The notes under the pieces were generated by a model. It searched no databases. It was given only the letters and a program-made list of their open reading frames with translations, and had not been told where the DNA came from. A stretch of 64,000 bases of DNA from Oopsacas minuta (taxonomy: Eukaryota > Animalia > Porifera): assembly GCA_024704765.1 (NCBI GenBank), contig JAKMXF010000318.1, forward strand, positions 62,001 to 126,000, written 5' to 3'. Position numbers and translations under genes: made by a program. Positions 1,904 through 36,211 of this stretch are shown here, piece after piece. Within the stretch, counting starts at the first letter, position 1. Every line of letters starts with the position of its first letter.

Positions 1904-2308
1904 AAGGACAAAAATTCAGCGAGGGAAATAGAGATCTTTATTGTTGATTACAACTCGATGTTATTATTATTACTTATTGTATCTTGTACTTGTATTGCTT
2001 AGCCTTATCGTGCATTATTACGAATATCAAATAGTGATATTAAATGCAAACAAATTATAATGATATGAAACAAATAAGGTTCACCAGAAATTTTCACTTG
2101 GGAGATGAACCTTTGAGTGTAAAATGTTGGAAAAAAAGCGCGAATGAAATATAAAATTGGCAATATACGTATGTACATACATTGAATCTATTTCTATACC
2201 AATACGAGCAAATAGATAAAAGCTTTGGCTATGTAAAATACCCAAATCATAGGGAAGCTAAAATATATAAAAATCCAGAGGTAAAATCTCGCGCATATTT
2301 AACTATTA

Positions 2309-9005: not shown

Positions 9006-9250
9006 AATTACAAGCTAGAAGGCTAACTAAAGGTTATTGAAGTGATGTAAAATTATATGAATATTTCATCGTGAGGTCAATGATATAATATTAGTAATAG
9101 TATTCTATGAAAAGACCAAGGTACAGATGCGAAATTATGAGAATTGAGAGTCCTGCAATATAATACTAAACTTCAAAAATTGTGGTTATAATAAAATACT
9201 AGTAACTTGTATAACCTAGAATTCACCGTGTATTTACTACAACTACTATA

Positions 9251-11347: not shown

Positions 11348-11870
11348 TAATAATAATCTTTTATTGTGTTTTGAATCTTTCTATCTAGAACAATTTTGGA
11401 CTAGTTTGCACGATGATCTAATAAAAGTTTATTCCACATGTAATTATGAATTTTCCATGCAGAATATCTGCATAGGTGTAATATACATTTAGAAATGGTA
11501 ATTATCAATTTCCAGCAAATTCGTAAAGTGACTAAATTCTAGGAATTTTTGGTTGGAAATTGAGTTCACTAAAAAGTTGTATTAGCGCCAGATTGACTAA
11601 ATACTGGTTTCATTCTAGTAGTGAATTAACACGATAATATTTCTCCCAACAATTAATTATAATCAGATTGTGTTAATACAATACACTTAGCTGGAATAGA
11701 AATATCCTATTCAAACACAACGTAATTAATCAGATAATTAATTAGATTTCAACTTACAATACACCTATTAATTTGGCCAATTTATTCAAGCAAACTCTAT
11801 TTTTGCTTTGTCTGAGATAATTTAAATAGGAAAAGTATTGAGCAGGCTCATACTAAGCATTTTACTCATT

Positions 11871-14800
11871 ATGTTTGCAATTTTCAATTTAGTTCTTTTC
11901 GTAAGTTTGATACTGCCTTCATTACAGACAGGTAACTTATACGCATATTTCCGAGTGAACAATATTTTCACAACTTTTTATTTACATATAGAGTACATCA
12001 AAGTGAAATGGAGCGATAATGAAGTTTTCCTAACTGAAGGAAGATCAATTGAGTTGAGTGTAGCTACTGTTGATTTATCGCTAACATGCTCTTACCCACC
12101 AGAACAAGTAATTTGGGAAACTCCAAAGGGAGATCGTATTAGCAAAGATGCTAATAATGTTGTTATTATAAGTATATTGAGGCTTGCAGAGAGTGGTAAT
12201 TTTACATGTACGAATAGTGACACTGGAGAATATATTAAGATACGAGTGATTCCTACAGGTTAGTTACTACTAAAACTTTTACAAATTAAGATAATTTCTC
12301 TTAATTAATATTCATGAACTTTGAATATTCAACACGAGTATTTCTTGCAAAAATACCAATTTGCAAATCTCCGGTGTTATATGTCTTCATGAATGTGCAC
12401 TTTTTAGCAAAATATAGATATATACTTTAAGTTCGAAAAGTGTTGCCAAAATCTTGGCATATAGTACGTATGTATGTATCATCAAGTAATTATCGAATGA
12501 GTACTAATTTTTAGGAAGTGGACTATTTGAAATATGCTCTAATAATACCGATGATATTATGCTAACGAATGGTGTATCAGTGATAGAACCAATTGGGAGT
12601 AAAAGAGTGTTTATTTGTCTCAGTTCTGTAAGTACGCCGGATGCTGCTAACTGGTATTTTCCTAACAGATCATTGATAACTAATGTCCTCAAATACTCTG
12701 ATGGTATGGAGCCTGGAATCGCGGTTTTTCACGCTCTCCTTGGGATCGGCGTTCATCAATTGAGATTAAACGGTTACTTCGACGAGACTAATACAGGTCT
12801 TTACCAATGCAGACCTAATGTCACTAATGAAAATATCAAAATACAAAGTGTATACATTTACACTAATGAAACAGGTTTGTAATCGCGATCAATTTTTCGC
12901 GATAATTTTAATTAAATTATATATTTAGGTTACATTAGAGTTACGTACAATCAAAACTCTGTTATTCTAACTACAAACAATTCGCTAGATATACCATTAG
13001 GCACTACTATGATACAATTGTACTGTCCCTTCTACAATGCTACTTGGCTATATCCTGAATCATCTTATATTTATAATAACTACAATTCTTTGGAAGTATC
13101 TGTATTTACGATAGAATCTGCTGGGAATTATCAGTGTATTGGCAATGATACAGTGCAAATTAATATAAACGGTTTTGGTAAGTTTCGTGTAATTTTCTAA
13201 ATATTTTACACATTCAATGAATTATTAAACTTTTAGGTCAAGCTCTTGTTGGAATATCAGATAATTATACAAGGCCTCTGTCTGGTCATGAGAGTTTAAC
13301 TTATTCTGGAGTTGAGCTAGAAATTCTATGTTTGTCATCTGACGACTTGAATTCGCAATATAATGGTTGGCATCATCCTACTATCGGAAGAATAGATACT
13401 CCTATTACTCGGGAAAATGGTAATGTTACTGTGTTAAATAACGGAAGATCTGGTGTATATAAGTTAGTACTTGAGGGAGAACTTTCACTTGAAGACGAGG
13501 GAGTATACACTTGTGGAATAGGAGATGAAAATACTGCAACAAATGATCTCACAGTCGGAATATTCACCGATAACAGTAAGTACCTTTTACCAAATCATAT
13601 GTAAATTTAATATTGAATATTCCACTGTGTATAAAAATCTCAAATTCTGCATTTTATTGAAAAATACACTGAATTCTATGTATAATTGATCCATTGTTCA
13701 AATGCCATACTGTATTTATACTGCACTACAACTACTAGAAATATTGTGTAATACAATCTCTATTGTATTTCTTTGATTTGTAACTTTGCTTTTGAAACTT
13801 CTAAAACTTTTCAATGTCTCTTCTAACTAAATTATTTGCACCTCAAAACGGATATAAAGTTGGGTATGTCTGTTTCTCGATAATCATGGGCTACGCGATT
13901 TATGGATCCTACCAAACTGGTCAAGGGATAAGTAATGCTGTAGAACGTATGAGAACTAAGGAAGGAACTGCTCTCAAGCAAGAATAGTGTAGTTTGTGTG
14001 TATGTGTGGAAATCGCGAATTATCACAGTATTCATTCGTTACATTTGTTATTTGTGTCTAATGTGTATTGTACTAAATAAATCATATGAATAATTCATTA
14101 GTTGACTTATCTTTTACTCAAATAGTTCACATTTTCAGTTTGCAACAATTGCATGATATTTGGGACTTAAATTCAAATTTTACAAATAGCATTCTTGTAG
14201 ATTTCATAACTGTGACTAGCTTTCCTTACGAGTTCCAAGTTTACAACCGACAAACAATTGCATTAGAAACCAACAGACAATCAATAATATTATCATGTAC
14301 ATACAATAATACTGAATGGTTACAACCTCCTGTCTCCTCCAATACTCTCCTCCCTGATGGTAGAATTCTTATAAACGAATTGACGAATAATTCTGAAGGA
14401 GAATACACGTGCAGTAATGCTACAGGAATAGAATATACTACTATCACTATACTACAAGGTTTGTGTAACAAAAACTACTTTTATCTATCAGCTTTTAGTT
14501 AATTTGAAATTTAGGTTCACAACAAATACAAATCTCAGTTGATGGAGTGATTTTCGATGATTCTCTACTAACTATATATCCATGTGCTCACCCGAAGCTT
14601 ATCACATGTTCTATAACGGATAATATACATGATACACACTTGCTATTGTACAGTGCATATTCTCGTGGAGTAATCTCTCATAATGTTAGCTCCGCGGTTC
14701 TTGACACATCAGTGCTACGAGCTACAGACTCTGGAGTATATATCTGTGGTACAGATGTACTAGGATATGCTGTCAGTGTAGAAATACAATTAGACATATT

Positions 14801-17800: not shown

Positions 17801-20800
17801 TTCCTCAATCAATATTTGTGCAAAATATCATTTGTAATCAATCTGCTATATTCCAGTTAATATTCTTAACTACAATTCTGTAAGTAACTCGCTATTTATA
17901 CTGAATTATTATTGCCTACATTCAATTTCATTATTAGTAGAACTCAGTTAGTACGTACTAGGGTTGAATTACGTACACTCGGTTAGTAGTTGATCGTACG
18001 TGTAGTTTGCTCCAAATCTGGTTATACTAATTGTACAAGAAGAATATTCGGATAAGACGTACTACAGTTAGTACGTGCTATTTTCGTTCCGAGAGGGTAA
18101 TTCTTATCCGAGTTAGACTGTATACATCCTGAAGTTTGTAAATATTCAAATATTCGTATTATGTAATTGCTATTTAGGTCAGATAATCTCAAATTTAACG
18201 AATACTTCCGTCATAATCAGTTTAATCACTCCGATACCATCCGATGCTATAATACAGAGCTATAGGGTAAGCATCTAATAATTTTAATATGCAATAATTC
18301 TATCATTTTTGTATTCACAATATATATTTCTAGATTACAATTTCTGGAGCAAAACTGTATGACCTTGACTACACAGAAACTCGTAATGCTATCTTAGTCA
18401 ATTCATCTGTAACTCAGCTTAAACTTGACGAACTAACTCCTGATACTCTATATACACTTATTATAGTATCTCTCGATAGTATGGGAGTATTTCTTACGAC
18501 CACTTCTGTATCAGTACATACAGAGCCTGGAGGTAAGCCTTATCAGTTGTTGCAAAATCAGTAATGACATATTCATTACATTTTAATTGAGATTGTCTAC
18601 AGGGCAACTTTCACAAACGGGACCTGTGGAAACAGGGAACGGTGTGACAATAAATATAGTGAATTCCTAGTCCATATAAATCGACCTCCATAAACTGGGA
18701 AATAGCCAAACTCGTGAAAACTTAGTAGCATTTTTTCGGCTTCCCTCACCTCTTTTGGATGGAGGTTTCACTGTATTTATAAAAAATGCGATTTAACATC
18801 TCTTGTAGTATTGATCGAGTATATTATATAATTTAGTGCTGAATGTTACCAACCCTGTCATCTGGAGCACTCCTCTTAGAGGTCTCCAATCTATTCTCCT
18901 TAATCTTGAAGGAACTTCTAATAGAAACGCAGAAATCTTGTAAGTTTATTGCTGAGCAAAAATACAAAGAATGTTGTATTTATTATTTTTATCTCTATAG
19001 ATATCATTTACTATTTATGGTTGAAGTACCAGTCAGTTTTGATACAGATTTGTTCGATATAATCGCTTTTCTTACAAACGGAAAATCGCGAAATTCGCGT
19101 GATACCTCAGCACTTAAGAGTGTGATACAACTGTCTATTGTCGCGAATATTTCTACCCAAACCTGCGATTCATTTCCTAACTTCTTACTTATTGGAGATA
19201 ATCGCGGAATTACACCCTGCGACTTTTCACAACTACAAAATCTCACAAATTACACTGACAAAATCCAAACAGATTTCAGTCCCGAATTAGAGTTTAACTA
19301 CAAATATGCTTTCGTGTTAACTGCATCAACAAGAAATGAGGTCAGTTCACGAGTTCAGTAACTCACAGATGTTTCTTTCAAATAAGTCCTTGCAATTTAT
19401 ATATACCTTTTTAGATCATATACTATTCACCTGTATCCGAATTTATAAGTAAGTTCGAATTATATTGCGATATAAATATTACCTATGTGTGGTTACGGTG
19501 AAATATTTTGCCTACTTAATAATCCATTATACCTGTATTGTAAGCTTTTTACATTTATGTTTTTATGATAAAGACCTTGCTTGATTCTATCTAGGCTTAT
19601 TACCTGAGGAAACTGATGGATTTGATTTTGGTATCATATACACTATTGTGGCGGTAGGGATTGTCTTCATACTGTTTCTACTGAGTGTTCTACTTATTTA
19701 TTGTCTAATACGTTTTGGGTAAGTCACTTTTGGAATTTTCAAATATTTGGCCATTTCACTCTACATATATGTCGGTGGCCGATGTTGTCGTGGAGATTTT
19801 TCTATACACTTTTCAGTGTTGGAAAAGGTCATTTTCCTTGATTAGTGAAAGGTCTCGCCGACGATTCATAAGTAAAGCTTTGGCAATTTATGCCCCATTT
19901 ACCTGAAATTTTTGTAGTAGGAAATTGTTTAAGAAACGTCGTTCTCCACCAAAACAAGAAGAATCACAGATGTTAGCTGCAATAGACCTTTCTTTAACTA
20001 CATCAAAAGGGTCTATTGCATTTGTCAATCCTCTTTTCAAAACCCTTGAAGAGCCTAATCGTATTCCTATTTCTTTAGCACCATTTGAGGGTAATGATCC
20101 ATTCTGAAATTCATTCCCCCAATTCATCCTTAAAATGTTGATTTTATCTACAGAGCTTGCGAAGAATACTTTTTGTATTAAGTCAGAATTTGTTATTCAC
20201 ATAGATGAGTTCGGCGAGCATGTTAGAGAACTACATGATAATTTTAATCAAGGGTTTACACAAGAATATAATGTAAGCTGTGTTTGTTTGAATAATGTTC
20301 TCTTAATTGTTATAACCTAAATATTCAGTTTGTATCCAAATTTACCAAATACTATGTACATTCAACTCCTGTTATATTAATCACGGATATATCGAGGTCT
20401 GGAATTGTACAAATATGGTCCCAAACGTAAAGTATCATAATTTCATCAAGTATCTCGACTCCGCTGATATTGAAGTAATTATCCTTTTAGCTTCGATGTA
20501 ACGGGAGTTGACTGTGTTTGAAATAGGAGTTTTGGAGATATTATTCATGATATTTACTTCCTTATACATCCTTATAATTACATTAATATATCTAGCGGCT
20601 ATATGAAAGACGTCAATCAGATGCTATTGTAGCTCAAAAACCCTGTAACAGACATCTGAATAGATTTGTAGATATCTTTCCTTGTGAGTTTATTACTATG
20701 GCTAGTTAGAAATTAGTATTCCCTCAACAAAACATTACATTTTATCATGTTTTGCATACAATAACCCATTTTTGTCTGTAAGTAATTTTTTTAGTTCCAA

Positions 20801-23800
20801 ATTTGTCCAATTAACTTTTCTAATACTTCCTTATACATGTCTAATATTTACATGATTCTGTTGATACTTTTAGACGATGATTCACGAGTTGTGCTTACGC
20901 CAATCTCTGAATCTGACCACGATTATATCAATGCTTCCTTTCTAAATGTAAGTTAGTTATTTTCTGTTAAAGGTATGCTTGATTTGAATAACTGACTAAT
21001 GCGCATAAACTGATGTGGCAATTTTGAGGAATGTATTTTGGGAATTATTGATACGGTTAACTATGATTCTAGGGATATGATAGAGAAAGAAATTACATCG
21101 CAACACAAGGTAAGCATATGCTTCTAGCATAATTACTCCAGGTGGTGAATGACTATGTTTATATCATCTTATTAATTGATCATCTGCAAAGCCTAAACTG
21201 GCCAAGACATCACCTAAATGACCGCTTGGCTCGCCATTGAAATTTACGTGGTTTTCTGTATTTTGAAACGAGACAGTTTTATTTGTTCCTGTGGTTTAAG
21301 AATTCCAATATAGAATTTTGTTTGCGAATCTCTCTGGATTTGTGCAACGAATCAGCACTTTATTACTGCCACATGTAAACAATGTTTTGTTTGATAATTT
21401 TGCTCTCATTTTAATTTGCTGATGATACACAATTGTAAAAGCTAGGAGACGCAAGATTAAAACGTAAAGGCTTGCATTTTCAAATTAGGAATGTTTCTAT
21501 TAAAAGATTAAACACATATAAATTACTATTTTCCCAATTCAAGGCCGTAGCAAGCAGATTTCTGTTGGTTTGGTTGACTTAAACAGAATTTATTGAGCTC
21601 AATGTTGGTCCGGTTGAAACTTGACCAACCGGGCCGTCTTCTATGGCCATGCTAAACATATACCGGTCGTACTCGATTGCAAACAGACCGCTCAAAGCCA
21701 GACAACAAATTTCAATTGTCGCAATAGGAATTTTGAATATAATTATATATGAAAACAGTCACTGAATAATTACTTTTATTTTAGAGCCACATTTAAATTT
21801 TAATTACTTAATACTCACGGTTAACAATGGTATAGCGTTATAGAACTATATTAACTTTGAATACAGTATTCGCCACTAGCTGGTTACAAATTAACAAGCA
21901 TTATTTTGACTTATTTTGCATAATCTCTTTTATGTATATTTGGGCTATGCAGTTGCTTCACGTGTCTTAATCTGTTTTAACTAAGTTCTGATTATTGAAC
22001 AAACCTTTAATCAATCTTAACCATTAATTCAATTTAATATATGTAACCACTCTATGGAGAGACTAAATGCAATGATTTATTCATTATAATTATTTATACT
22101 TTTCAAGCAAATTTGTCTAATTGTTTTTGTAATTAAATGCATAAGCCTTGAGGCAGAACTAATCAACCATCGAACTTCACATGCTTTACACTAAAAATAT
22201 TCAAATCAGTAACTCATTTGTAATTTGTTATGAGTTTCAAACGCCCTCTTGTTAAATATTCATTGTTAATATTTTGTAAAGTAATATTTACTCTCCAGCT
22301 GATCTACTATTACATATTGGTACTTATACACTATAGCGAATTCCAAGTATCGTATGTGGTATATTTATAAATATTATCAACTATGTGTAAAAAACTCATA
22401 CAATATTGTAGTAGTAATTCTTATGATACACGTGCTCTACTTTATATGTTTGATAGTAATTGAACTCGGTTTCAATTTGTAGACTCTTTATGTTCAATAT
22501 CATATAATATTGATTATACTTTCAATTTAGTTTGTCTAAATATACTTTTGTTATGTAACTGTTACTTTCTTATTATTGTTTATTGGTGTGTTTAGCTCCA
22601 TTTATGGACATGATTGTTGATTTCTGGCGTCAATGTTGGGAGTATAATATTGCTGTAATTGCACTGCTAACTGATTCTATTGAAGGAAGAAAGGTAGGTT
22701 GTATTTTCGAATTTACAGTACTTGTACGCGCTGAATTCGGTAATAATTTACTGTACAGACAATTCCCGTTGTATTGAACACGGATACAGCTAAATACCCG
22801 TATATAACTAAACCCCAAATTATACTAATATGGTCCCAAACTGTCTAGGTTAAATACATCCCATCGGTTATATCGAGGTAATTATCGCGGTTCCTTGAGC
22901 TTTGATATAACGAGAGTTGACTGTATTCTTATTCCCAATTTAAACACAAGAAATTACTAAAAGGAAGTTTATTTTAATAGATATATTTGTGCCTTTTAAA
23001 ATACTCCCACGCAACGTTTCTGCACTAAAATGCTATTCTAAACTAGTAATACACACATTATTTATTAATATAGCGTTTCACGCGTGTTAGGAGGTTAATT
23101 ATTAATTTTACAGTTTCCAATTAAATTTCAATAAAACACATATTTTTAAGCAAGCAAAAGCATTATTTCGCAATTATTATTAACATTCCTTTTACCCAGA
23201 ATTATTTTATACTTTCAACAAAAGTTTTTTGAATTTAATAATTAAAGTGTATCAGTCGTTTAGTGAAAGAAGTTCATTTTTATACTTTCCGATTGAATTG
23301 AATATTTATTCTTATTCCCTTATGAAACTAACTATCTTAATTACATACCACAGTAAATTCTTTAAGTCATTTGATTTTCTAAATGTTTCCGCAATCTCGA
23401 GAATATTTTTGGGAATTAATATTATTCTCAGATATAAATTTTTTGATATAGTAATCTCTAGTTAAAACATTTATGAATAGAATTTCAATACAATAATACA
23501 ATTAATATACCGCGATATTTCATACAAATATATGATGGAATCTTTTTGTAATTTTTTAACAATTTTCCTTTCTATTAGACTCGAAACTACTATTATTGGC
23601 CAGAAGACCTTACAACAGAGATATCATTCGGCCCATTTGTAATTAAACTCACAGATATTCTAATAAAGCCTAGCTTCATACGAAGAGCATTATTATTAAA
23701 GGTAAAATTCAGTTTACTATTACTTCGCTTTCCTTGATCGATATTCAGTAAATATTTTATGAAAACTCAGCCACATATACAGTCTGTGTCACACTTTTTT

Positions 23801-26800
23801 AATTATTATCACTACGAATATAATCATTTCTTATCTCTCGAATTATTGCGGTCCCATTAAAGGAAATGATCTTTATATTTTACAAGCATTATCTATAATG
23901 AATATTTATCAATTATATGTCTAGCTTATTAATTACAAAACTAATCTATATTGTTATTCCAAAGAAGTTTGTATACTTGTTACTAATTACTTCTCTTCTA
24001 TCAGACTTGATTATTAGATTAATTTTCAAACTTTTGCGCTACCTTTTAGTTTCTCTTGGAATATCCAAAGTAGTATACGATACAGTATATCTCATATTGA
24101 AAGATATTGTCTTGTGTTTTTAATTAGTTGCTTACATATAGAAATGAAACTAATAGCGGTAATGAAACTTGAAATGGCCTAATCTCAACTGGTAATGGCC
24201 TAATATTGTACACTAGAGACTCGAATCTAGTTCCATTTCTGATTTCTTTGCTGTATATATAAACCAAGTTTTAAAATTAACTATATAGTTAGATCGTTAT
24301 TATTTCAAATTCCTGTTAATTTACTTTCAGTTGTAATAAAATCAAAAGTATTTATAAACAAAATGTCTACCAGTATTGAGAAAAGTCAAATATTCCCTGA
24401 ACAGAAGTTCAATACTGTTGTCACCTGTTCGAATAGTGTTGATACCTCTTCACTCCTTCCAATTGTAATGTCTCAACCAAATGCACAACCAGAGCCTGTT
24501 TGCATCGTAATTACAGACCCGAATCAACCGAAACAATACTCTAATTCGATCCTCTCCGTTCCAAACGTGATTTCCTACTCCAACCCTATCATCCCGAATT
24601 TGTACTACCTTGGACAAGATATTCCAAATATTGTGCCTGCTACGCCTCCAGGTACAGAGTCCAATATTTCTGTTGTTACACCTACTAAGACGGAAATACC
24701 TCTTGTCAATAATCATGGCTTCTTCCCAATACCTTTATCGCAACCTCAACTTGCAAAGAAACCTCTATTATCGAGTTCGAATATTGAAAATCACCATTCC
24801 AGCACTTCGTCTTGTGAAACAATTAGCGAAAAAACTCTTTCTGGAAACGATCAAGGCTATAAAATACTAGATAAAAGGCTTAGAGTGATGGAAGGACTCA
24901 TGAAGCAATCTATTAAATTACAGAAGAGAACATTGAGACACCAAGAGCGAATGGAAAAAATTATACAGCATTGTATGAAGGCTAAGTATGAAGAACAAAC
25001 TGTTGCTTCCGGTACCAATCGAATGGTACATTTCCAGCGATACTTGAATGATGCGCAACCTCCTCCGTTATTTCGTTATTCTAGCCATCCTGAGAATATC
25101 GTAGTGCCTGTTATTGAGAGTTCATCTCCGAGTGATTCTCCTACTCTGTACTTTGAACCCCAGAAGGAAGACTCGATCTCTCCTAACCTCACGATTGATA
25201 TGAGCTTAATGGAAGCGGCGGAACATAAATCACCGCATAAATACCACTCACATAGCTGTTCAATGTACAACAAGTCAATTCGTGATTTCAATGATGTTGA
25301 AACGATTCAGTGGTTAGATCGTATTCTCACTATTCTTGGGCTTGGAGTAACAGTGGAAAAAATTCAAGAAGTTTTATCACAGACAAACACGATCACTCAC
25401 TTTACTGCTGAGTTTCAAAAAGTTGTTTTCTCAAACCATGAACGGAAAACTCTAACTACAAGTGGGAAATTCCGTAAACGGAAGTTGGAAAGGATTGTGC
25501 TCGGGCCGCTAGATGGGAGTAAGCTCCAGGGCATAATACAGCTGAGTTTGTATTTGTTCGGTGTTGCTGAGAGAGATGAAGATAGAGTGAAGTACCAACT
25601 CAAACAAGCGATTGATGAAAAAAATCGCAGGGAATTTTATCGTGAAGATCGTGGGACTAAAAGGGTACACTTGTCATCAATTCCTAACTAAAATTGAATG
25701 AATAGAATACTAATGTAATCACTAAAATAATATTTTCTCTTGTTTTTCCATTTCTACAGCCTTTGCGGTTGTGACTTCCAACGTTCTTATTTGTTTTACC
25801 TTCTCTAGTTTGCTTTATGTATTTTCAGTAATCTCTTTACAATTATGTAAATACAAATTGTTTGTCAAATTGTTGATTCGCAATGAATATTCTCTAATAA
25901 TTATTCCTAAAATTATAATTAATTATTTAAAATATATTATTCCGGAAAATGACAAGTTTATTAATCTCTAATGAATTCTAAATAAATTGTTTTATTGTGT
26001 TAATCGTGTTTTTCCCTTTTCTTTAGAACATACTTTTTCCCAATGAAACACGGCGAATTAATCAATTCCATTACATTTCTTGGCCAGACACTAGTATGCC
26101 AGAGATCAGTTCTTTTCTGAACTTCCATACAATTGTGAGCTCTTTCTATAAATCTCAAAAGCAGAGCGGTCCTTTACTGGTTCATTGCAGGTTTGTGGAA
26201 TTTCTATTTTCTCTTTGCGACCGCGATTGCTCTATCCGATCAGGACTTATTCACTATAGGCATTCCGCTTTTGCCATGCGGATATTATTAAATGTACAGT
26301 GGTGTTCGCCTATTAGCAATATTTGTCAAGTTTTTTCATGGATTTAGAGTCCATTTTGTGTTGGAAATAATTCCTCAAATAACAAGTTCGCGTATTAGCA
26401 AGGAATTCGTGATAATATGACTTGCTGATAGGTGGACTCTTGAGATAAGGACTGGAAATCTTGTATCCTCAATCGTAAATTGTAGCAGGCTTCTACTTTG
26501 ATCTCATAGATATAAAAATTCGGTCCCAATTCACCCAGCGAATAAATCCTTTCTAATAACTTCGTTTGATGTATAATTATCAAATTCCTGTTTACAAATA
26601 TTTTCTGTATTTTGTTGGAGCTCATCCTAGTCACAAATATGGCCTTCCACATGCTGGGAAAATATATTGTCTAATTGTACATTAATTCTTGCGAGAAGAT
26701 GTTTCTAAATATGGTGAATATATTAGGTTTGAAGGTTAAAGTATTACTGAATTCGATGATAGGTCATTATATACAATTGATAAAATGAGTTTTACTCAGG

Positions 26801-28016
26801 TTTAGAGCACTCGTGGGGGCTTGTGGCTCAACTTCATGAGGTTATTGTCCAATTCAAGATTTCTTCCCAACAATTTCCTGTCAAACTTACTAATTAATTT
26901 CATTCTATAGACAATGGAAGTGTCTTTGCGGAGATTCTGCAGTTAAAATTACTTATCTTTAATTATTCAGTATTTATCATATTTTGCATATGGCCATTTC
27001 TGGTTATTGATCCTTCTTCATTGCAAAATATGTTAACATAACCACACAGCAATAGCTCAACTGATTATAATGTTTATGGTTAAGTCACAAATAATATTTG
27101 ACTTAAAGTGTGTGTATATCCTCTTGATACTAACTGAATTCTTTGAGGAATAAGTTAAACTGAGCGAAGAGAATGTGCAAAGGAGCAAACGCAGCCTGTA
27201 CTATCCTGTCTCATGCAAGTACTACCCGAGGGAAAGTCACTTTCCTTTAGGCTCATATCGTATACAATATATATCTAGAGCACGTGATAGGGAACTACCC
27301 AATTGATTAACTATAGTTAATAGGTCTATATTCTCCTAATTAACTTAATTACCCTATTATAGGTTGAAAGTGTTCCATTACGTAATTTGTTAATTACTAA
27401 TGATTTTAAGACATTGGGGCTGTTATTGCAGGTTCCACTGTAGTTTGATACTGGTAATTATTCAATTAAGAGGAGTTGAGGTATTACGTATTCAGTTAAG
27501 TGCTCTGATTCTAATTTCTAAGGCTCCGAATTTGATGGAAAACGAGCTAGAAGAAACTAGTGTTGATTTATTGTACAGTCAACTCTCTTATATCGAAGCT
27601 CAAGGGACCGCGATAGTTACTTCGTTACAAGCGGAGTTCGATTTAACAGATATAATATATGTTACTTTGACGTTTTGGGACCATTTTTTCACACTTTCAG
27701 ACTTCCATATAAGCGTATATTTCGAAATTTCAGTCTTTGATATAACGGAAGTTGACTGTATTCATTAATATGTTAACTATTTCCCTGAATAATTCGCTGG
27801 GGTTTGAATAAGCGTCTACCCAAACTAGTGAATAAAAATAGAATTTATCCCTGGAAATTTTACACATAATATAACCCAATTGGGATAGTCAAACTTCTAA
27901 AGTTGTCGTTATTCTTTTCAAGGAAATAGCGTAGTTTTAAATATATTGTGCGTATTTGGGGGAAACAGACTTCTGTTGACATTAATTTTTAATGATGGAG
28001 AAGGCCTAACCGATTC

Positions 28017-28083
<67 letters not shown>

Positions 28084-31000
28084 GTAGAGATCTTGAAGCA
28101 TACTTACTTTCTTTAAACTTTTGGCAAAGTATTTGAGTAGGAAACTATCAAGGAGAGCTTCCCATATCTACTCCAACATAATTTTGAAATATTTTGAGAA
28201 CTTGTACATAATTATGTGAAATAAAGATTTCTTACTTTGCATAACTATTTTGCTAAACTAATCATTTGTTTGGGAAAGGGTCAGTTATGCAAAGTTAAGC
28301 TTTAATTAGCAAAACCTATACAAGGTTATGTAAATCTTATTAACTTTGTGTGTTGGCAAGTAAACAATGAAGGAATGTTGCATAATAATATTTATTCACC
28401 AAGTATGTATACGTATTTCCCTGTATACTTTTCATTAATTAAGCAGGAACCCCGGCCACAATCACATTAAGTAATATCTGATTTTATTATTTGTGGCTTA
28501 AAAATAACCGTTTTCCTCTTGTCGTTCACATAATTTACATTCTGCAATCGTGTATAATGTATTTTGCTTTCAGGATCCATATATGGCATTCTAGTTTATA
28601 ATTGTTATTACTTATTCAGTGTGAAACGTCAATAAATTAAAATCTGTCCAATCGAATTTACAGAACTTAATCGTGTACTTGTTTTGTCTGATTTCCCGCT
28701 GTAAAGTTTGCGATTGTTATTGTGTACTTTCAGGTGTTGCGTATGTGTCTATCTGTTAACGACCCTTGTATCATATTTCTGGTATGCTTGAATAATTGGT
28801 TCAAGTTCTATGAAGTATTTAGGGACTGATATTTTAAGTTCCCCGAATATAATAATAACTATTGTATTATGGCTAACACAATTATGCTACTAATAATAAT
28901 AATAACCACATTATTCAATTTGCTAACCATTTGGCTTAGGTATAGTTTCAATCAGGCGATATGTGATTAATCCTTCACAATATGAAATTCGATCCCTTTA
29001 TAAATTATCACACCATAATTTGCAATCAAGAATTTCATATATTTCACTTTGCGGATTATTTAAAGATTATTTAGCAAGGATTTATTTTGTATATTATTTA
29101 GGTCTGGTGCTGGTGCAAGTGCGGTTTTCATATTCTTAGATATTTTACGCACGCAAGCTCATGCAGAAAATCAGATAGATATCCACAGGTGTATCACTAC
29201 TATGCGATCCATGCGCTCCAGGATGGTCTGCTCTATGGTATGTACGTCTCCATTCGTCATGATAAACCTACACTAATTAACTGGCTATCAAATTTTAGTC
29301 TTGGAATTTGATTTATCAAATTTCTTATCTCTATTCTTTGAATGTCAAGTATATTAGGATGACTAAACAAGTTGTGTATTTGATGATGACGATACATTCC
29401 GAATATGTTGCATTATCCAAATTACTGTACACCCTCGCTAATCCGAATAACACTGTTCCAATTGCGAAATAATTCGTTCAGATTGGTCAATACATTGAAA
29501 TAATACTATAAGAGCTAGGAGTACATTTTTTCCAAGGTTACAACCGAATAGTTCAATATTTGGTTAACAAGCGGATATCAATATTCGGTCAAGCAACTAT
29601 TCATGAATACTGATATCCGGTCAGATTGGTTTAAACCTTGATTTTTTAGAAAGTTGTACAAACGATGAAAAGGCTGTAGTAGAATTGGATACAAATGAAT
29701 CCTTTTGAAAATTTGCTTGAATTATGTATTTTGACAGGAGTACTACATTTACGCACATGATTTATTACTTGCTTCCCTAATCTGTGGAAACACATGTATT
29801 GATGCTCCTTCATATCCACATCGAATCAAGAAACTATCTGAGGTAGACTCGAGAACACATGCTACTGGTTACAACACTGAATATATCGTGAGTTAATCTG
29901 TTAATTTAACTAACAACAGGGTTAATTTGTAATGGTGAAGAGCAAAATAGTTATATTAATTAGAATTGTCTATTGAACTCCATTATAACGTAATGCTTAA
30001 ACACTCGTATTGTATAAGGGACATTTGGACTAGAGTGATACATTTTAAAGTCGATTTACAATTTTAATCTTAAATATGAAGGAATTGATGTTATCGTTAA
30101 TCTTGTTGACTTAGACATTAGATCAAATATCAAATTCGCCTCAAGACTACCCACATACACTGGCTCAAGAAAATCCTACAATGAATAGAAAGATAGAATT
30201 CCTTCCAAGTAAGATTAAATATTTCTAACAAAGATCACATTTTTATAGATTATCATCCATTTTTGTAGTAGACTCAAGATGCGTAAGCTTATCTCATGGC
30301 GAGTATATTAATGCTACATTTGTGAATGTAAGTTATTGAAACTGAATGTTTATTATAATTTTTACCAAATTTTGAAATTGATAATAATTAGGGTTATGAA
30401 CGTGAAAATGCATTCATCATTGCTGAGTCACCATTGATTAACACAGTTGGGCGTTTTTGGCAATTAATATTCGAGCATAGATGTCGTGCAGTGATCACGT
30501 TATGTGATCTTACACAAGACCAACAGGTAACTTTATAATGTAATATCAGAACTAATTGCTGATTAATACCTAATATTTAGTTAATACAAATTGTAATACA
30601 GTTTTTTTGTAATTCATTTAGGAAGTTGGTGCTAAATATTGGATGGAGTCGGGAGAACCAGTTACCTATAGAGATCTTACTGTGCAATTATCTAATATCA
30701 TCCACCCAGAGCATGGAGCATACACAATTCACACATTTATGTTAACATCTGCAAGAATAAAGGTGATTCATACTTTCAGTTTGTTTAATTACAGGTTAAT
30801 TAAGTTCTGGTAGTTTGCTTAACTGATTTTTGAACTTCTAATTTATTCCATGTTTGTGTGAGTGGAATATTATTTTACAAATAGTTAAGATAATTTGACC
30901 TAAAACTGTTAAACTTCGATATGATTAACGCATGTCTCCATTTGTAGCATGACATATGATTTGCGGTTAGTATTCAGCAAATTCTCATTACTTAATATTA

Positions 31001-34000
31001 AATAATTATTTAAGTGGATTTTGAGTGTATTTACCAACGAAATGTTGGCATAGGATGTATTGCTATATACTAATTTACTTGAGTATTTTTACAATTATTT
31101 CAAGCGTATATGCTATGTTTCAATCTATTCATTGTTAATATTAAGTCAAATTCTTATTTTGCTATGTAGGCTATTAATATTGTAAATTGTAACCAAGGAT
31201 ATAAGCAGTGTTTATTTCTGCAAGGTTGCAATAGCCATATCTGTTAAAATCTGCGATACGATACAATATATCTGAAAATACCCGATACGATAAATATCGG
31301 TAAGATATATTAAAATAGAAAAATATCGAAAATGTCTGAAAATATCAAAAATAGGGAAAATAGCTGGAAAATACGGGAAAAGATGGAAATCTCGATATCG
31401 ATATTTCCGATAAAATACCGGATTGTAAGATGTTTTGGATGTTTTTCATTTCCGATATGTCGGTATCAAACCTTGATTTTTGCATGCTTTTTGAGTGGAA
31501 CAAAGTACGTATTTTTCGTGTAAATTTACCGTGTTGTTGATTACAATGTTAGCATAAAATGGTAACTGCTTCGGATAAGGTTTCAAATTTCTTGCCTCTT
31601 GCACGCCCTGTTGCAATGGAAGTAGCACCTGTTGGTTATTGGTACATACAACATGTTCTGAACACAAACAACACAGTTTTATCTGAGAATCTTCCATCTA
31701 AAATCGATATCCCTGAAGATGGTGATCAAATTGAAAGTTCTGATATTTCAAAATTGTTGTTAGATTCGGCTGATCCAATTGACCTTGCTCTCCTTGACCC
31801 TACTGCATGGAAATCTCAGGACCATTATAAACTACTCGGCCTTGGCCAGAAAAGATATAAAGCAACCATGGATGAGATAAAAACGGCGTACAGGAATAAA
31901 GTTATCAAACATCACCCGGATAAAATGAACACCAAATCAGTGGTTCCTTCAAACGAAAATGAAGATGAACAAGCAAGCAAAGAACTGACTTTAGAAGAAA
32001 AATATTTTCAATGTATCGTTAAAGCACATGAAATTCTATCCAATCTATCAAAACGTAGAGCTTACGATAGTACTGATCCTTTCTTTGATGATTATATACC
32101 AGAACCTGATGACATCATTGATGAAGATTTCTTCTCTGTACTTAAACCTGTTTTTGAAAGGAATTCACACTTTTCTACTCTTCAGCCTGTGCCAGATATT
32201 GGAGACATAAATACACCTTACACAGAAGTGCAGGACTTTTATAGATTTTGGTTTGGATTCAATTCATGGCGTGAATTCTCCTATCTTGACGATGAAGAGT
32301 TCGATCCTGAAAAAGCAGAAAAACGAGAGGAGAAACGTTGGCTCGCGAAACAAAACAAACATGGAAGAGCTCAATTAAAGAAAAATGAAATACAGCGTAT
32401 TATTAAGCTAGTTGAGGTAGCCTTTGCTAATGATCCTCGTGTGCTAAAAGCTGAAGAAGAAGAGAAAAAGAGAAAAGATGACGAGAAGAGAATGAAACAA
32501 GAGAGACTCGCAAAAGAACATGAAGAGAGGGAAAGGAAGAAGAAAGAGAAAGAAGATATAGAATTGAGAGAAAGAGAAGAACGTGCAGAAATTGAAAGAT
32601 TGCAAGAAATTGAAGATAAGAAGCAACGCGAAGAGAGGAAACAAGCTTTTAAAAGACAGCGTAATGAATTTAAAACAGCTTGTAGTAAACAAAACAATTT
32701 CTCTACAACTCATATAAATAGTGCTTCTGCAGAAATAACGCAGAATATTATTGAAATCGAGAATTTATGTCAAGCTTTGACATTGGAAGAACTGACAGTT
32801 TGTACAAAGAGGATCAGTAGTGAACCTCAGTTTGAAGCTTCTAAAGCTATCTTTGAAGAATATGTTTGTAGTATGAGAGATAAGCAGGAAGAAGAGATGA
32901 AGAAATCTTTGACACAGACTGGTGGCGCACAAGGTATGTGCATTTTTGTAATTTTACAACTGAGTGTCGTTACTACAGTAAAACCTTCGTACATTTTCCA
33001 TCTTTTATTTTGTAATTTTGTTGTGGCGAGCAAACAAGAACAATTTGTTCGAAAATGATGTGAAATATGGTCAACGGATATATTGAAAAACCCGCTTATA
33101 TTGAAATCTGAAATTGTACAAATATGGCCCCAAACCGTCGAAGTAACAAATTTTCATCGGTTATATCAAACAGTAATTCTCGCAGTCCCTTGAGCTTCGA
33201 TATAACGGGAGTTGAATGTAATTGTAATTAATAGCTACTGCATATTATCTTTTAGGGAAGAAAAAGGATCAACTCAAACATGACGATTGGACCGCTGAAG
33301 AAACACAGCTGCTTGTGAAAGCTGTTACTCTCTACCCAGCTGGTACTCAAGCACGTTGGGATGTTATAGCAAACTACATCAATAAACACAGTACTAGCGA
33401 TATTAAGAAAACTGGTAAACAAGTAATAACTAGAGTCAAGTGTTTACAGAAAACTGATGGTAAAGAAGCAATTAAATCCGATGCACAGGCATTTTCGTTA
33501 TTCGAAAAATCACAGGGACATAAAGCACAGATTTCTTCCGAAAAAACTATTAACTATGAGGCAGCTGTGGTTAATATATCATGGACAAGTGCTGAACAGA
33601 AATTATTGGAAGAAGGTTTGCGTACTTTTCTAGCTACAGATGCAGAAAGGTGGGAGAAAATCGCGAAAAAAGTTGGCACCCGGGATGAGAAAGATTGCAA
33701 AAGAAGATTCAAAGAGATCGTAGCAAGTTTACAGGCTAAAAAGGCAGCAACTAAAAGCTAATTTCCTGTTTAGTAGTGAATCTCACAATATTAGTTTGTA
33801 GAAAGTTGTTGCTATTGATTGTTTGTAAAATCATACATTTATTTGTAAAACACACACACAGATACGTTTTTATCATTTGTAATCTTAGGGTGGCTTTGAA
33901 GTAAAACAGTTTATCTATCACGAGTTTGATGAAAACTTCCTTCCTGCGAATTCTAACAACTTTGTAAAGCTCATTACTCAAGTTATAGATCTCTATTCTG

Positions 34001-36086
34001 ATGAGAAGACTGATCCCATCCTAGTCCACTGCGGGTGAGTGTCTTAAAGTTGAATTTTTTATTTATAAATTCGATAAAGTAATGGGCGAATAACTGAGCT
34101 AGATATCGAATTTAATTTGGTATAAGATAGTAAATTTGATATTTTACCCTGTTGTATGCAAAAGGAGATCCAGACCAGTGTTGCTAGATGATGTGCGTAG
34201 AAAGTTCATACCATCTTCTTGCCAAAACTAAGATTTCATACCATATGCCAAAATCTATGAACTCCATCATCTGGCAAAACTACCCGGATTTTCACCGCCT
34301 ACCCAAATAATAAAGCGCTGAATAGGAATATATAATACGTGGAACAATAAATTTGCAATAAATATGTTGTTATACGTTTTGAGATAAACTGGAAGAAAGT
34401 TAGAGATAAATAGGATATCGTAGCTAGTCTAAACACAAAAATTCAGTTGTGGAAACCATGGATTAGCGCTGCCTATTTTGTTGCTCGAAAAACATAAAAT
34501 CAATCAGGAAGCAAGCGCCCATCACTACGGCTTTCACGCGTACATCCAAATCCATAGGGAATTTGATGCCAAAGTTATCAGCATCAGTGAAATATTCCCT
34601 AGCAAGGCCACTCCACTGCTTTGATACTTTTCCAACGCTGGTACCATCTACTGCCGTTACATCAAAATCAATATCAGAGCACCATCTACAACATAATGCG
34701 ATACAGTTACCAGTGATATTAAGTATTTCTCGCTCTTCAGCATCAAGTACAGTGAATTTAGGATTCCAGAAGGTACAGTCTTGTCTCACGTAGCCTACTA
34801 TTTGACCGGGAGGCGATTGAACTTCCATTTTCTGTAGACAGCAGAAACAACACCAGGCTGAGCATCTATACGGGCGTACAATATGAATGACTTCGTGCTG
34901 TGTATTGTCCATGATTGACATCTCAAATGGCCGGTTAGGTCCGCAATACTGTCTAGCACAGCAATTACTGTTCTCAGCTGCGAAATAGATCTGCTGACCG
35001 AGCGTGTTTTTTATGACGTAGCGATTTGCAGTCTCCCAACCTGTCATTAGTTCCCATAGTTCAACCTGTTGGTGTACTAGGATCTGATCTATCTGAGTCA
35101 GGTACTCCAGTCCAGGAGGGCAATTAGCCACTGCTTGCGGGGGAGGCATCCACTCTACTGTTTTAGTCTGTGGTGCACCTGGAGGAGCAGGGGGAACTTG
35201 ACCTTGTTGATACCCCTGGGGTGGCTGTGCGTACCCTTGAGGTGGTTGTGCGTACCCTTGAGGTGGCTGTGCGTACCCTTGGGGTGGTTGTGCGTAGCCC
35301 TGAGGAGGTGGGGCACCTTGTCCTGGAGGTATTGCTGACATTCTATTAGCTAGAAATTAAAGTATCCTATTTATATTTATAATATAATCAATAAATTTAT
35401 TAACATTTATACTTATTTAGTGATACCGTAGGATGTTCTGGAATGTTCTGTGCCTCGCTATACTCTATCGAGCGACTGCTTGCAGAAAATGAAGTAGATG
35501 TGTTCGGATGTGTGCGACAACTGAGGAAAGATAAGCCAGGCATTATACCTACTCTTGTAAGTATAAAAGAATATTATTTCACCAATCATGGTTGAATTCT
35601 AAGTAGCTGTATCAAGTTACAGATATTTTAAGTACCAAGAATTCTAGCAAGTGTTGTGTTGATGTGAAACACGTGTGTATGTTTATAAAATTGAGCTTCT
35701 CAGGTTAATTACAAGCCTAGAGCCCCCCTGATAATTATTTATGTATACGTATAATTAATTTATTCTCAAAAGGCTTCTTGCACGTGGTAATAATAAATGT
35801 AGTAGGAATTCAGTGTGACAAGGAAAGTTTAGAAAAAATAACGTCCTATACAGAAATACTTTATGGAATTGCAGAAATTTGGTAGCCTTTTTGATAAGTA
35901 GGGGTCACCCGCTCAGCACTGCTTGCAATTAATCGACATTGATACGCAGTTTATCTACACCCTAGTATTTTGAAAGGCGGTAAAAACAAAGCTTTTCCAA
36001 TCGATATTTTTTCATTCCTCTATTTTCTTTAGACACACTACAAGGGTATCTACAAGACGATTTTATCCTTCATCATTATTAATTGA
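11871..36086 (+). CDS. Receptor-type protein tyrosine (pseudo)phosphatase: signal peptide, 12 Ig-like, 2 FN3, membrane-proximal domain, TM, PTP D1, PTP D2
   Basis: Signal exon 11871-11931; Ig exons ~11992-17116; FN3 exons ~17345-18531; TM exon ~19595-19718 (IIYTIVAVGIVFILFLLSVLLIYCLIR). D1 exons include ~20593 (NRFVDIFP), ~20873 (DYINAS), ~21073 (YIATQ), ~22596 (DFWRQCWE), ~23579-23701, 26027-26190 (SWPD..LLVHC) and 29102-29237. D2 exons include ~30269 (YINATF), ~30392, ~30623-30762, 33889-34034 (ILVHCG), 35421-35556 and 36033-36086 (YKTILSF, stop). The junctions I checked keep frame. Confidence 0.88.
13814..13987 (+). CDS. 57-aa single-TM microprotein, COX14-like, nested in receptor PTP intron 13576-14200
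   Basis: ATG tct ctt...gaa TAG encodes MSLLTKLFAPQNGYKVGYVCFSIIMGYAIYGSYQTGQGISNAVERMRTKEGTALKQE. GYK, a hydrophobic helix, YG.Y and a charged tail resemble COX14 as I recall it. Below the ORF-track size cutoff. Confidence 0.55.
   Translation: MSLLTKLFAPQNGYKVGYVCFSIIMGYAIYGSYQTGQGISNAVERMRTKEGTALKQE
18600..18773 (-). mobile_element. MITE family B copy (TIR ~CAGTGTAACCTC..CAAACGG, TA TSD)
   Basis: ta|cagggcaactttcacaaacggg ... ggaggtttcactg|ta, inside a receptor PTP intron. Confidence 0.75.
20359..20514 (+). mobile_element. MITE family A copy (TIR CAGTCAACTCCCGTTATATCGAA)
   Basis: ta|cattcaactcctgttatat...ttgtacaaatatggtcccaaa...ttcgatgtaacgggagttgactg. Confidence 0.85.
22756..22923 (+). 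mobile_element. MITE family A copy
   Basis: ta|cagacaattcccgttgtattgaa...tttgatataacgagagttgactg|ta. Confidence 0.85.
24363..25691 (+). CDS. Coiled-coil plus BEN-domain-like protein, nested in receptor PTP intron 23702-26026
   Basis: Intact intronless 442-aa ORF with a low-complexity N-terminus and coiled coil (LDKRLRVMEGLMKQSIKLQKR). The C-terminal VVFSNHE..TLTTSG...PLDGSKLQGII....F....LKQAIDEKNRR fits the BEN-domain pattern (by eye). Confidence 0.7.
   Translation: MSTSIEKSQIFPEQKFNTVVTCSNSVDTSSLLPIVMSQPNAQPEPVCIVITDPNQPKQYSNSILSVPNVISYSNPIIPNLYYLGQDIPNIVPATPPGTESNISVVTPTKTEIPLVNNHGFFPIPLSQPQLAKKPLLSSSNIENHHSSTSSCETISEKTLSGNDQGYKILDKRLRVMEGLMKQSIKLQKRTLRHQERMEKIIQHCMKAKYEEQTVASGTNRMVHFQRYLNDAQPPPLFRYSSHPENIVVPVIESSSPSDSPTLYFEPQKEDSISPNLTIDMSLMEAAEHKSPHKYHSHSCSMYNKSIRDFNDVETIQWLDRILTILGLGVTVEKIQEVLSQTNTITHFTAEFQKVVFSNHERKTLTTSGKFRKRKLERIVLGPLDGSKLQGIIQLSLYLFGVAERDEDRVKYQLKQAIDEKNRREFYREDRGTKRVHLSSIPN
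26230..26710 (-). pseudogene. Decayed reading frame of unknown origin
   Basis: One frame reads protein-like with interspersed stops: KHLLARINVQLDNIFSQHVEGHICD*DELQQNTENICKQEFDNYTSNEVIRKDLFAG*IGTEFLYL*DQSRSLLQFTIEDTRFPVLISRV. Confidence 0.3.
27576..27758 (-). mobile_element. MITE family A copy (reverse orientation)
   Basis: ta|cagtcaactctcttatatcgaagctcaagggacc...tttgatataacggaagttgactg|ta. Confidence 0.88.
28017..28080. repeat. (AAT)n microsatellite, about 21 units
   Basis: Uninterrupted aat tract. Confidence 0.98.
28081..28855 (-). mobile_element. Possible 5'-truncated, decayed non-LTR retrotransposon ending in the (ATT)n tract
   Basis: Minus-strand stop-riddled frame (...IKFCKFDWTDFNLLTFH...IAECKLCERQEENGYF) resembles the Cys-rich ORF2 C-terminus of LINEs. 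It is followed by an (ATT)n tail. Confidence 0.3.
31221..31475. mobile_element. Putative TIR element with gatacga/gatatcga subterminal motifs
   Basis: caaggttgcaatagccatatctg ... ccgatatgtcggtatcaaaccttg form imperfect inverted ends with repeated gatacgata/gatatcgata motifs. No clean TSD. Confidence 0.45.
31559..33761 (+). CDS. DNAJC2: DnaJ subfamily C member 2 (MPP11/zuotin), nested in receptor PTP intron 30763-33888
   Basis: J domain (QDHYKLLGL...HHPDK), zuotin domain (FYRFWFGFNSWREFSYLD), charged coiled coil and two SANT domains. Exons 31559-32933 and 33256-33761 join in frame. Confidence 0.95.
33075..33218 (+). mobile_element. MITE family A copy (left TIR lost), in the DNAJC2 intron
   Basis: aaacccgcttatattgaaatctgaaattgtacaaatatggccccaaacc...ttcgatataacgggagttgaatg|ta. 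Confidence 0.8.
34176..34282. mobile_element. Small TIR element (CAGTGTTGCCAGATG-type ends)
   Basis: cagtgttgctagatgatg ... catcatctggcaaaacta inverted pair with an internal duplicated ttcataccat..gccaaaa. TSD not recognisable. Confidence 0.45.
34463..35341 (-). CDS. PLSCR: Phospholipid scramblase A, nested antisense in receptor PTP intron 34035-35420
   Basis: CPPGLEYLTQIDQILVHQQVEL, Cys-rich CSAWCCFCC, FTDADNFGIKFPMDLDVRVKAVVMGACFLIDFMFFE. N-terminal PPQGYAQ repeats (21 bp, ~5 copies). Intronless. Confidence 0.95.
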   Translation of the reverse strand: MSAIPPGQGAPPPQGYAQPPQGYAQPPQGYAQPPQGYAQPPQGYQQGQVPPAPPGAPQTKTVEWMPPPQAVANCPPGLEYLTQIDQILVHQQVELWELMTGWETANRYVIKNTLGQQIYFAAENSNCCARQYCGPNRPFEMSIMDNTQHEVIHIVRPYRCSAWCCFCCLQKMEVQSPPGQIVGYVRQDCTFWNPKFTVLDAEEREILNITGNCIALCCRWCSDIDFDVTAVDGTSVGKVSKQWSGLAREYFTDADNFGIKFPMDLDVRVKAVVMGACFLIDFMFFEQQNRQR

Positions 36087-36211
36087 ACTCACGCATTTCT
36101 TCTTACGCAATCTACTTACATAGAGAGAACCAATGCTTTATTATTGGACTCATGCATTATATAGAACTTAGTAGATACCCACAAGATGGTGTATCAACCA
36201 TTATTTATTAT

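Follow-up and report, generated by a model that had tools for sequence, protein, structure and literature searches.

The window analysed here comprises 64,000 nucleotides of the genome of the glass sponge Oopsacas minuta (GenBank assembly GCA_024704765.1, contig JAKMXF010000318.1, positions 62,001 to 126,000 of the forward strand), with a G+C content of 33-36% throughout. Between its positions 11871 and 36086, this stretch very probably contains one gene for a receptor-type protein tyrosine phosphatase (PTP) that holds four independent functional genes, each residing wholly inside one of four of its introns. Three of the nested genes share the strand of the host, and the fourth, encoding a phospholipid scramblase, is antisense. 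Such an organization had been proposed in an initial annotation made from the letters of the sequence. It is upheld here by a gene model of the host, by RNA joints that pass over two of the nested genes and by comparative data, and all coordinates proposed at that stage proved to be correct. The coding sequences (CDSs) of the nested genes, including both exons of DNAJC2, each fall into a single host intron.

11871-36086, + strand: host gene, defined by a splice-aware model, colinear Pfam Y_phosphatase pieces and Pfam matches on the 1845-amino acid (aa) product called by GenBank
13814-13987, + strand: nested gene 1, located in host intron 5 (13576-14125) and encoding a microprotein of 57 aa with one membrane span; missing from the public annotation
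24363-25691, + strand: nested gene 2, a 442-aa nuclear-type protein (open reading frame ORF442) in host intron 29 (23702-26026)
31559-33761, + strand: nested gene 3, a DNAJC2/MPP11/zuotin orthologue of 626 aa with two exons (31559-32933 and 33256-33761) in host intron 36 (30763-33888)
34463-35341, - strand: nested gene 4, phospholipid scramblase A of 292 aa with one coding exon, in antisense orientation within host intron 37 (34035-35420)

Structure of the host gene

Stop-free segments of the + strand encode immunoglobulin (Ig)-like, fibronectin type III (FN3) and transmembrane sequences and two sets of tyrosine phosphatase motifs. We modelled the host with a splice-aware dynamic programme at two settings, followed by curation by hand. 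At the naive setting the nested genes were taken as host exons, and at a high exon penalty real exons were missed. The resulting gene for a receptor-type tyrosine (pseudo)phosphatase spans 24.2 kb and contains 39 exons separated by 38 introns, all of which are of the GT-AG type. Its CDS of 6717 nt runs in a single open frame without internal stop from the ATG at 11871 to the TGA at 36084-36086 and encodes a protein of 2238 aa, and the scattered exons thus join into one in-frame receptor PTP from signal peptide to stop, as had been proposed. The product consists of a signal peptide, followed by twelve Ig-like exons (all in phase 1), two FN3 domains, a transmembrane segment and the PTP domains D1 (exons 24-32) and D2 (exons 32-39). 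The signal peptide, the ectodomain, the single transmembrane segment and the two PF00102 domains are found in one modelled polypeptide, as expected for a receptor PTP, and the 1845-aa GenBank product shows Pfam matches to fn3, Ig and Y_phosphatase. Most host introns are 50-330 bp long; longer ones measure 550 bp (intron 5), 1486, 885, 2325 (intron 29), 2911 (intron 30), 3126 (intron 36) and 1386 bp (intron 37). The exons and domain pieces that bear on the nesting are the following.

19595-19718, + strand: host exon 22 of the model, encoding the transmembrane segment
20864-20947, + strand: D1 piece, PF00102 positions 10-36 (Pfam)
22586-22702, + strand: D1 piece, PF00102 positions 46-84 (Pfam)
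23579-23701, + strand: host exon 29, the 'YWP' segment of D1 and last exon before ORF442, with 47-85% aa identity in six assemblies, where it lies upstream of the ORF442 orthologue
26027-26190, + strand: host exon 30, from the WPD loop of D1 to the HC of its P-loop and first exon after ORF442 (PF00102 130-177)
26045-26191, + strand: D1 piece, PF00102 positions 130-177 (Pfam)
29102-29237, + strand: host exon 31, the remainder of the D1 P-loop (HC/RSGAGAS, Arg replaced) and the next helices; from the model, with orthologous exons in all relatives
30395-30526, + strand: D2 piece, PF00102 positions 38-81 (Pfam)
30622-30762, + strand: host exon 36 (D2), last exon before DNAJC2; RNA joint 30762/33889, contig depth 641
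33889-34034, + strand: host exon 37 (D2 up to the VHCG of the P-loop), between DNAJC2 and the scramblase gene; RNA joints on both sides, PF00102 133-176
33898-34032, + strand: D2 piece, PF00102 positions 133-176 (Pfam)
35421-35556, + strand: host exon 38, the remainder of the D2 P-loop, DTVGCSG (Arg to Cys); RNA joints 34034/35421 and 35556/36033, PF00102 180-222
35428-35556, + strand: D2 piece, PF00102 positions 180-222 (Pfam)
36033-36086, + strand: host exon 39, the terminal exon with the stop TGA at 36084-36086; RNA joint 35556/36033, orthologous exon in the related assemblies L005, L008 and L006

The PF00102 pieces are colinear over ORF442 in D1 and over DNAJC2 and the scramblase gene in D2, and both domains are thus interrupted by the genes that had been named as interrupting them. 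In addition, D1 carries the 2.9-kb intron 30 (26191-29101), which was absent from that earlier picture. Two features considered for the model were dropped. A D1 P-loop exon at 26300 (HCSGVR...) gave way to 29102-29237, which matches canonical PTP sequence in alignment and shows conservation in every relative. The last host intron, suspected from continuous high-scoring segment pairs to be a gain in O. minuta, also precedes exon 39 in L005, L008 and L006.

Neither PTP domain contains the catalytic HC(X5)R sequence in its P-loop. In D1 (HCRSGAGAS; window 26180-26190 and 29102-29125), the position of the arginine is occupied by Ala, Pro or Ser in 7/7 species. In D2 (window 34026-34034 and 35421-35441), six of the seven genomic loci contain HCGDTVGCS, and L006 keeps DTVGRSG (L006:18724-18745). 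As neither P-loop of the O. minuta protein has the catalytic arginine, the receptor is probably a conserved pseudophosphatase. The D2 P-loop is also the site that is split by the intron holding the scramblase gene (intron 37).

Host transcripts pass over two of the nested genes

Splicing of the host over its guests was investigated in sequencing runs of one sample, four of which cover the region. The depth in runs X1-X3 is flat (~100-250) and DNA-like, and the fourth run (X4) is RNA-like, with an exon-shaped depth and spliced contigs, which were placed on 30400-36100 only. The X4 contigs contain four joints, all with GT..AG borders. The joint 30762/33889 passes over DNAJC2 and the joint 34034/35421 over the scramblase gene; the joint 35556/36033 corresponds to the last host intron and 32933/33256 to DNAJC2's own intron (32934-33255). 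The former two are exactly the junctions predicted in the initial annotation, and the last bears out its claim that DNAJC2 is itself spliced. These joints demonstrate for two of the guests what had been anticipated as a necessity of the arrangement: the RNA polymerase transcribing the host continues through DNAJC2 and the scramblase gene, and the host exons on either side are joined by the spliceosome. The depth of X4 differs between the elements of the locus as follows.

Host exons: 577-1086, at a similar level on both sides of the guests
DNAJC2: 2000-5470
Scramblase gene: 150,000-316,000
Intron stretches: 31-145

Conservation of the arrangement in other assemblies

Orthologues of ORF442 were identified on long contigs in the ENA, six of which were fetched and searched by tblastn to map host exons and guests. 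In L004, L005, L007, L008 and L009, all four guests are located between the same host exons, in the same order and on the same strands (exon 5, 57-aa ORF, exon 6; exon 29, ORF442, exon 30; exon 36, DNAJC2, exon 37, scramblase on the - strand, exon 38). A 5.1-kb metagenome scaffold (L012), which encodes a scramblase identical to a protein of the Vazella pourtalesii transcriptome, spans exon 34/35 to exon 38 only and displays the order exon 36, DNAJC2, exon 37, scramblase on the - strand, exon 38. In L006, ORF442 and DNAJC2 are nested, intron 37 has a length of only ~200 bp and exon 39 follows after a 70-nt intron; here, the orthologue of scramblase A (84% identical) is found 1.4 kb past the host stop, outside the host. 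In the ORF442 tree, L006 forms the long branch and is sister to the rest under midpoint rooting, and the scramblase gene was either captured after the split of L006 or expelled in L006. The search for the same nesting in related genomes, suggested at the outset as a check by tBLASTn, was thus successful in five assemblies and partly so in L012 and L006. The arrangement is old and stable, and it is common to V. pourtalesii and several assemblies taken as glass sponges.

Probable autonomy of the nested genes

The RNA of DNAJC2 and the scramblase gene exceeds that of the host 3-300 fold, and the RNA of the surrounding introns is 5-20 times below that of host exons. Because of these differences, the nested genes would appear to be separate transcription units, which may be driven by their own promoters inside the introns. 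The nest as a whole exemplifies the packing of genes into introns that characterizes compact hexactinellid genomes.

Several observations weigh against this reading of one host with four independent guests. The promoters inside the introns are putative. The run type of X4 is unrecorded, and its RNA nature follows from the depth profile and the spliced contigs. Each RNA joint is found in one Logan contig, whose shorter side comprises 24-30 letters, as limited by the word length of the assembler, and is short but exact; the probability of a chance match of 24 letters at a predicted acceptor is negligible. The junction 23701/26027 is located outside the part covered by RNA and rests on the colinear PTP profile and on flanking exons conserved in six assemblies. 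Similarly, splicing over the 57-aa ORF rests on the reading frame and comparative data, with both this ORF and ORF442 residing outside the RNA-covered part of the window. The host model contains 1846 codons in the range where GenBank has 1845, and one exon border may thus be 3 nt off. Finally, the 5' end of the scramblase mRNA contig consists of 11 letters that are not encoded in the window, for which reason the first exon or a leader of this gene lies elsewhere, and it is strictly its CDS that is nested.

The latter observation bears on the strongest alternative, which we regard as unlikely. According to this alternative, the same-strand guests (57-aa ORF, ORF442 and DNAJC2) would not be fully autonomous but receive a spliced leader (SL) by trans-splicing just upstream of their ATG, with part of their RNA being cut from host-intron RNA in an operon-like manner. 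In the glass sponge Aphrocallistes vastus, a trans-spliced leader of ~37 nt has been reported (Francis et al., 2023; PMC10282587). In O. minuta, the scramblase A mRNA contig does not stop at a genomic acceptor (TATAAATAG/G at 35367) but extends further 5' by the sequence ...AAAAAACTTAC(AG), which is found nowhere in the 64-kb window. These non-encoded letters, which adjoin the contig at window 35342-35368 (minus strand), derive either from a spliced leader or from a 5' exon located at a distance. In a contig from another run, representing the mRNA of an ORF442 orthologue (L010:1-22), the first 22 nt end with ...GAATACTTACAG, of which ACTTACAG is common with the scramblase leader. Moreover, strong acceptors precede the ATG of ORF442 by 32 nt (tttactttcag/) and that of DNAJC2 by 7 nt, and the X4 depth at the DNAJC2 acceptor increases from 32 to 2198 over ~50 nt.

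Against this stands that the only leader fragment of O. minuta belongs to the scramblase gene, whose antisense orientation precludes an origin of its mRNA from host RNA, that the stretch in common between the two leaders is only 8-13 nt long and that the leader of L010 could be an ordinary exon of a 5' untranslated region (UTR). A second transcript contig, L011, which contains DNAJC2, originates from an unrelated organism and is uninformative with respect to the leader. The RNA of DNAJC2 is 3-5 times as deep as that of host exons and 50-100 times as deep as that of the upstream intron, and the depth of host exons remains steady across the guest. Since DNAJC2 RNA exceeds that of host and intron, and host exon depth does not fall, most of it cannot come from host transcripts. 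In an extended version that we consider slightly less probable still, same-strand nests would be tolerated owing to SL trans-splicing before the ATG, which would uncouple the guests from the host, and the four-guest nest would be an operon-like unit contained in introns.

The 57-aa ORF and ORF442

For the two smaller same-strand guests, we have considered whether they might not be genes at all but chance ORFs, decaying retrocopies or alternative host exons. Neither of the two has a Pfam match, in case of ORF442 even at an E-value of 10, which is a point in favour of this view. Its probability is very low in light of the following properties.

Length, start and stop of the 57-aa ORF agree in all seven sequences compared, which have 30 invariant residues in common. 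The aa identity in the six relatives of O. minuta is 70-79%, and an in-frame stop precedes the ATG in L004. Its non-synonymous divergence (dN 0.14-0.16) is far below the synonymous divergence (dS 1.3-1.5; dN/dS ~0.10-0.12), by which it qualifies, on comparative sequence grounds, as a real gene under purifying selection. An AATAAA signal is located 89 nt past its stop and 40-45 nt upstream of the host acceptor that follows. Because the exact sequence is absent from a collection of 15 billion proteins, we regard the gene as unannotated. Its initial label as COX14-like is unsupported. No match to COX14 (PF14880) was obtained for any of the seven orthologues at E-values up to 10, look-alikes in the Atlas are assorted small mitochondrial or transmembrane proteins with scores of <=0.85, which is the chance range, and a homology search retrieved one orthologue only. 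The resemblance to COX14 is thus confined to the size of 57 aa and the single transmembrane segment, and we have rejected this identity.

ORF442 is called as a gene in GenBank and is intact in eight species. Its eight orthologues are 56-73% identical, the last 150 residues being nearly invariant while the N-terminal half has diverged. An mRNA contig of an orthologue from another run is free of host exons, and in the window the next host acceptor is preceded, at 40-45 nt, by an AATAAA signal. The protein contains a coiled coil (~163-211) and a BEN-like C-terminal domain (~300-434). The initial annotation had described it as a BEN-like gene of 442 aa, of which the gene and its coordinates stand and the BEN identity is plausible but not proven. 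In a search of its alignment profile against the PDB, the best match is the BEN domain of BANP, with a weak E-value of 0.16. In the AlphaFold model, only the coiled coil and the C-terminal helices are confident, and pLDDT values in the BEN-like region reach only 65-85. Foldseek ranks 1, 2, 3, 5 and 7 in the PDB are BEN domains (BEND3, Insv/Insensitive, BANP and NACC1), with weak E-values of 0.65-2 and TM-scores by target of 0.43-0.63. Because a profile search of 1.8 billion representatives matches two clusters only, both its own, the family is lineage-restricted at the sensitivity of HMMER. Upstream of ORF442, a stretch of ~220 nt (24084-24301) shares 69% identity with the corresponding position of L004. 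No other conserved non-coding sequence was found in the introns of the host, and this one may represent the promoter or 5' UTR of ORF442.

DNAJC2 and the scramblase gene

The identity of the two other guests is clear. DNAJC2 shows the domain order of its family (J domain, zuotin homology domain, RAC head, C-terminal SANT/Myb), with Pfam matches to PF00226 (DnaJ), PF21884 (ZUO1-like ZHD) and PF16717 (RAC head) in exon 1 and to PF00249 and PF13921 (Myb/SANT) in exon 2. It is 35-43% identical to named DNAJC2 proteins of other animals and is listed in GenBank as DnaJ-like protein subfamily C member 2 [Oopsacas minuta]. There is no canonical poly(A) signal in the 127 nt between DNAJC2 and host exon 37, and the X4 depth drops from ~1800 to 145 right after its stop; the 3' end of its mRNA is therefore presumably very short.

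Scramblase A matches PF03803 over the full length of the family profile (positions 4-221 of 221, E 1.1e-88). Its N-terminus contains PQGYAQP repeats, encoded by a 21-nt tandem repeat with four to five copies at 35204-35308 of the minus-strand CDS. The nested scramblase gene is followed in tandem by two more, located past the end of the host (37190-38257 and 38802-39866, - strand; 355 and 354 aa in GenBank), and the relatives likewise have a second copy, with ~60-70% identity to scramblase A. Clustered with scramblase A at 90% identity is the entry WP_411022914.1, labelled 'Salmonella sp. s51228' and derived from a 732-bp contig, which is most likely sponge DNA mislabelled as bacterial.

The public annotation of the locus

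GenBank calls five genes at the locus. Besides DNAJC2 and the scramblase gene these are the following.

11871-23737, + strand: gene of 1845 aa, which reads through the donor at 23701
24363-25691, + strand: gene of 442 aa, identical to ORF442
26096-30813, + strand: 'Y_phosphatase' gene of 286 aa with an internal ATG as start, which reads through the donor at 30762

No gene call covers host exons 37-39 or the 57-aa ORF. The expectation that an annotator would fragment the locus is thus borne out, with the host being split into genes of 1845 and 286 aa and three of its exons omitted. Taken at face value, these calls describe two or three separate PTP-related genes that are ordinary neighbours, with nothing nested. 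This view has even less to recommend it than a dismissal of the small ORFs. The RNA joints 30762/33889 and 34034/35421 contradict the read-through end of the 286-aa model and reveal three missing 3' exons. Both models cut a PTP domain in the middle of its fold (at PF00102 positions ~85-130). The 23 codons upstream of the ATG of the 286-aa model (26096) are conserved at the protein level in six other assemblies, and the 1845-aa model ends in 11 unconserved codons that result from reading past the GT donor.

Least probable of all is an assembly artefact in which unrelated pieces were joined. In its favour, short-read DNA contigs are interrupted by a high-copy repeat at ~33100-33220. Misassembly is ruled out because six or seven long-contig assemblies of other species, which are independent of each other, display the same order. 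The RNA joint 32933/33256 bridges the repeat, the DNA contigs of three runs are unbroken over the region except at this one repeat and those of X1 span 30400-32968 and 33186-36100 without break.

Relation to known nested genes and operons

Nested genes were described as abundant in the glass sponge A. vastus, with 2432 cases that account for 12.4% of its genes and include many conserved ones (Francis et al., 2023; PMC10282587), which bears out the abundance of nested genes in glass-sponge genomes mentioned in the initial annotation. For O. minuta, only 83 nested genes were counted in the public annotation, and such low counts were put down to annotation settings (PMC10282587). The O. minuta genome paper makes no mention of nesting and bases arguments on gene counts and gene absences (PMC10280926). 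The locus described here shares with the nests of A. vastus the predominance of single-exon coding genes in introns, the compact genome, the conserved microsynteny and the failure of annotators. A published example is the glassin locus (PMC10282587), whereas the present host with its four guests is described in neither of the two studies (PMC10282587; PMC10280926); it differs also by a mis-split host with RNA support for two junctions. The locus is thus a well-supported new instance of a known habit of glass sponges, to which it adds a corrected gene model, an unannotated microprotein and a long conservation.

The orientation of the guests, by contrast, is less exceptional than had been supposed. 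Same-strand nesting was initially considered unusual, but ~63% of human nested genes are antisense and ~37% are on the same strand (PMC3192792), and with such frequencies three same-strand genes out of four are not remarkable (binomial P ~0.15).

Like the classical nests in Drosophila and human, exemplified by introns of dunce, NF1 and F8, the guests are complete units in long introns over which the host is spliced, and they are often single-exon and independently expressed. The O. minuta locus is more compact, with introns of 0.55-3.1 kb that are nearly filled by the guest, 3' ends of guests that are 40-130 nt from the next host acceptor and four guests in one 24-kb host. With nematode and tunicate SL operons, it has in common the tight same-strand packing, with an acceptor following closely after the upstream RNA, and the existence of a leader in glass sponges. 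In contrast to such operons, the guests are located inside introns, their RNA is above that of the host and the leader fragment is known only from the antisense scramblase gene. The host itself resembles type IIa receptor PTPs (LAR, PTP-sigma and PTP-delta) in its signal peptide, its ectodomain of Ig and FN3 domains, its single transmembrane segment and its tandem D1/D2 domains, and differs from them by its twelve Ig-like and only two FN3 domains and the lack of a catalytic arginine in either P-loop.

With this locus, a checked multi-gene nest with RNA support is available for O. minuta, where the public gene set truncates the host twice, drops three of its exons and misses a 57-aa gene. If systematic, such errors could bias claims on missing metazoan genes and on the number of introns per gene in O. 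minuta. The locus also offers a natural test case for the read-through by a host of the poly(A) and splice sites of same-strand guests at a distance of 40-130 nt from host acceptors, and it includes a rearrangement, with the scramblase gene being inside the host in most assemblies and outside in one (L006).

Other long introns, repeats and a neighbouring gene

A fifth guest was sought in the long introns 21110-22595, 22694-23578 and 26191-29101. In blastn and tblastx comparisons with three relatives, no conservation was found in these introns beyond simple repeats, their ORFs have no Pfam match and they contain no Rfam family or tRNA. The count of four guests is right. Intron 30 has a size of 2.0-2.9 kb in 4/4 species compared (window 26191-29101; L004:11998-13963; L005:11851-14577; L006:11730-14065), with no detectable common sequence, ORF or known RNA family among the four.

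A dispersed repeat is found at several positions of the locus.

33088-33228: dispersed repeat of ~150 nt in DNAJC2's own intron (repeat-search families D2 and D3)
20379-20524, 22794-22933 and ~27726-27768: other copies, in host introns

The DNA word depth of this repeat in X1-X3 is 9,000-14,000, compared to ~100 in its flanks. As the depth is ~100 times that of the flanks, its copy number in the genome is on the order of a hundred, and it is this repeat that breaks short-read contigs.

Upstream of the host, a single-exon gene for a mismatch-repair protein of the MutL/PMS type (9251-11347, + strand, 698 aa) ends ~520 nt before the host start codon.

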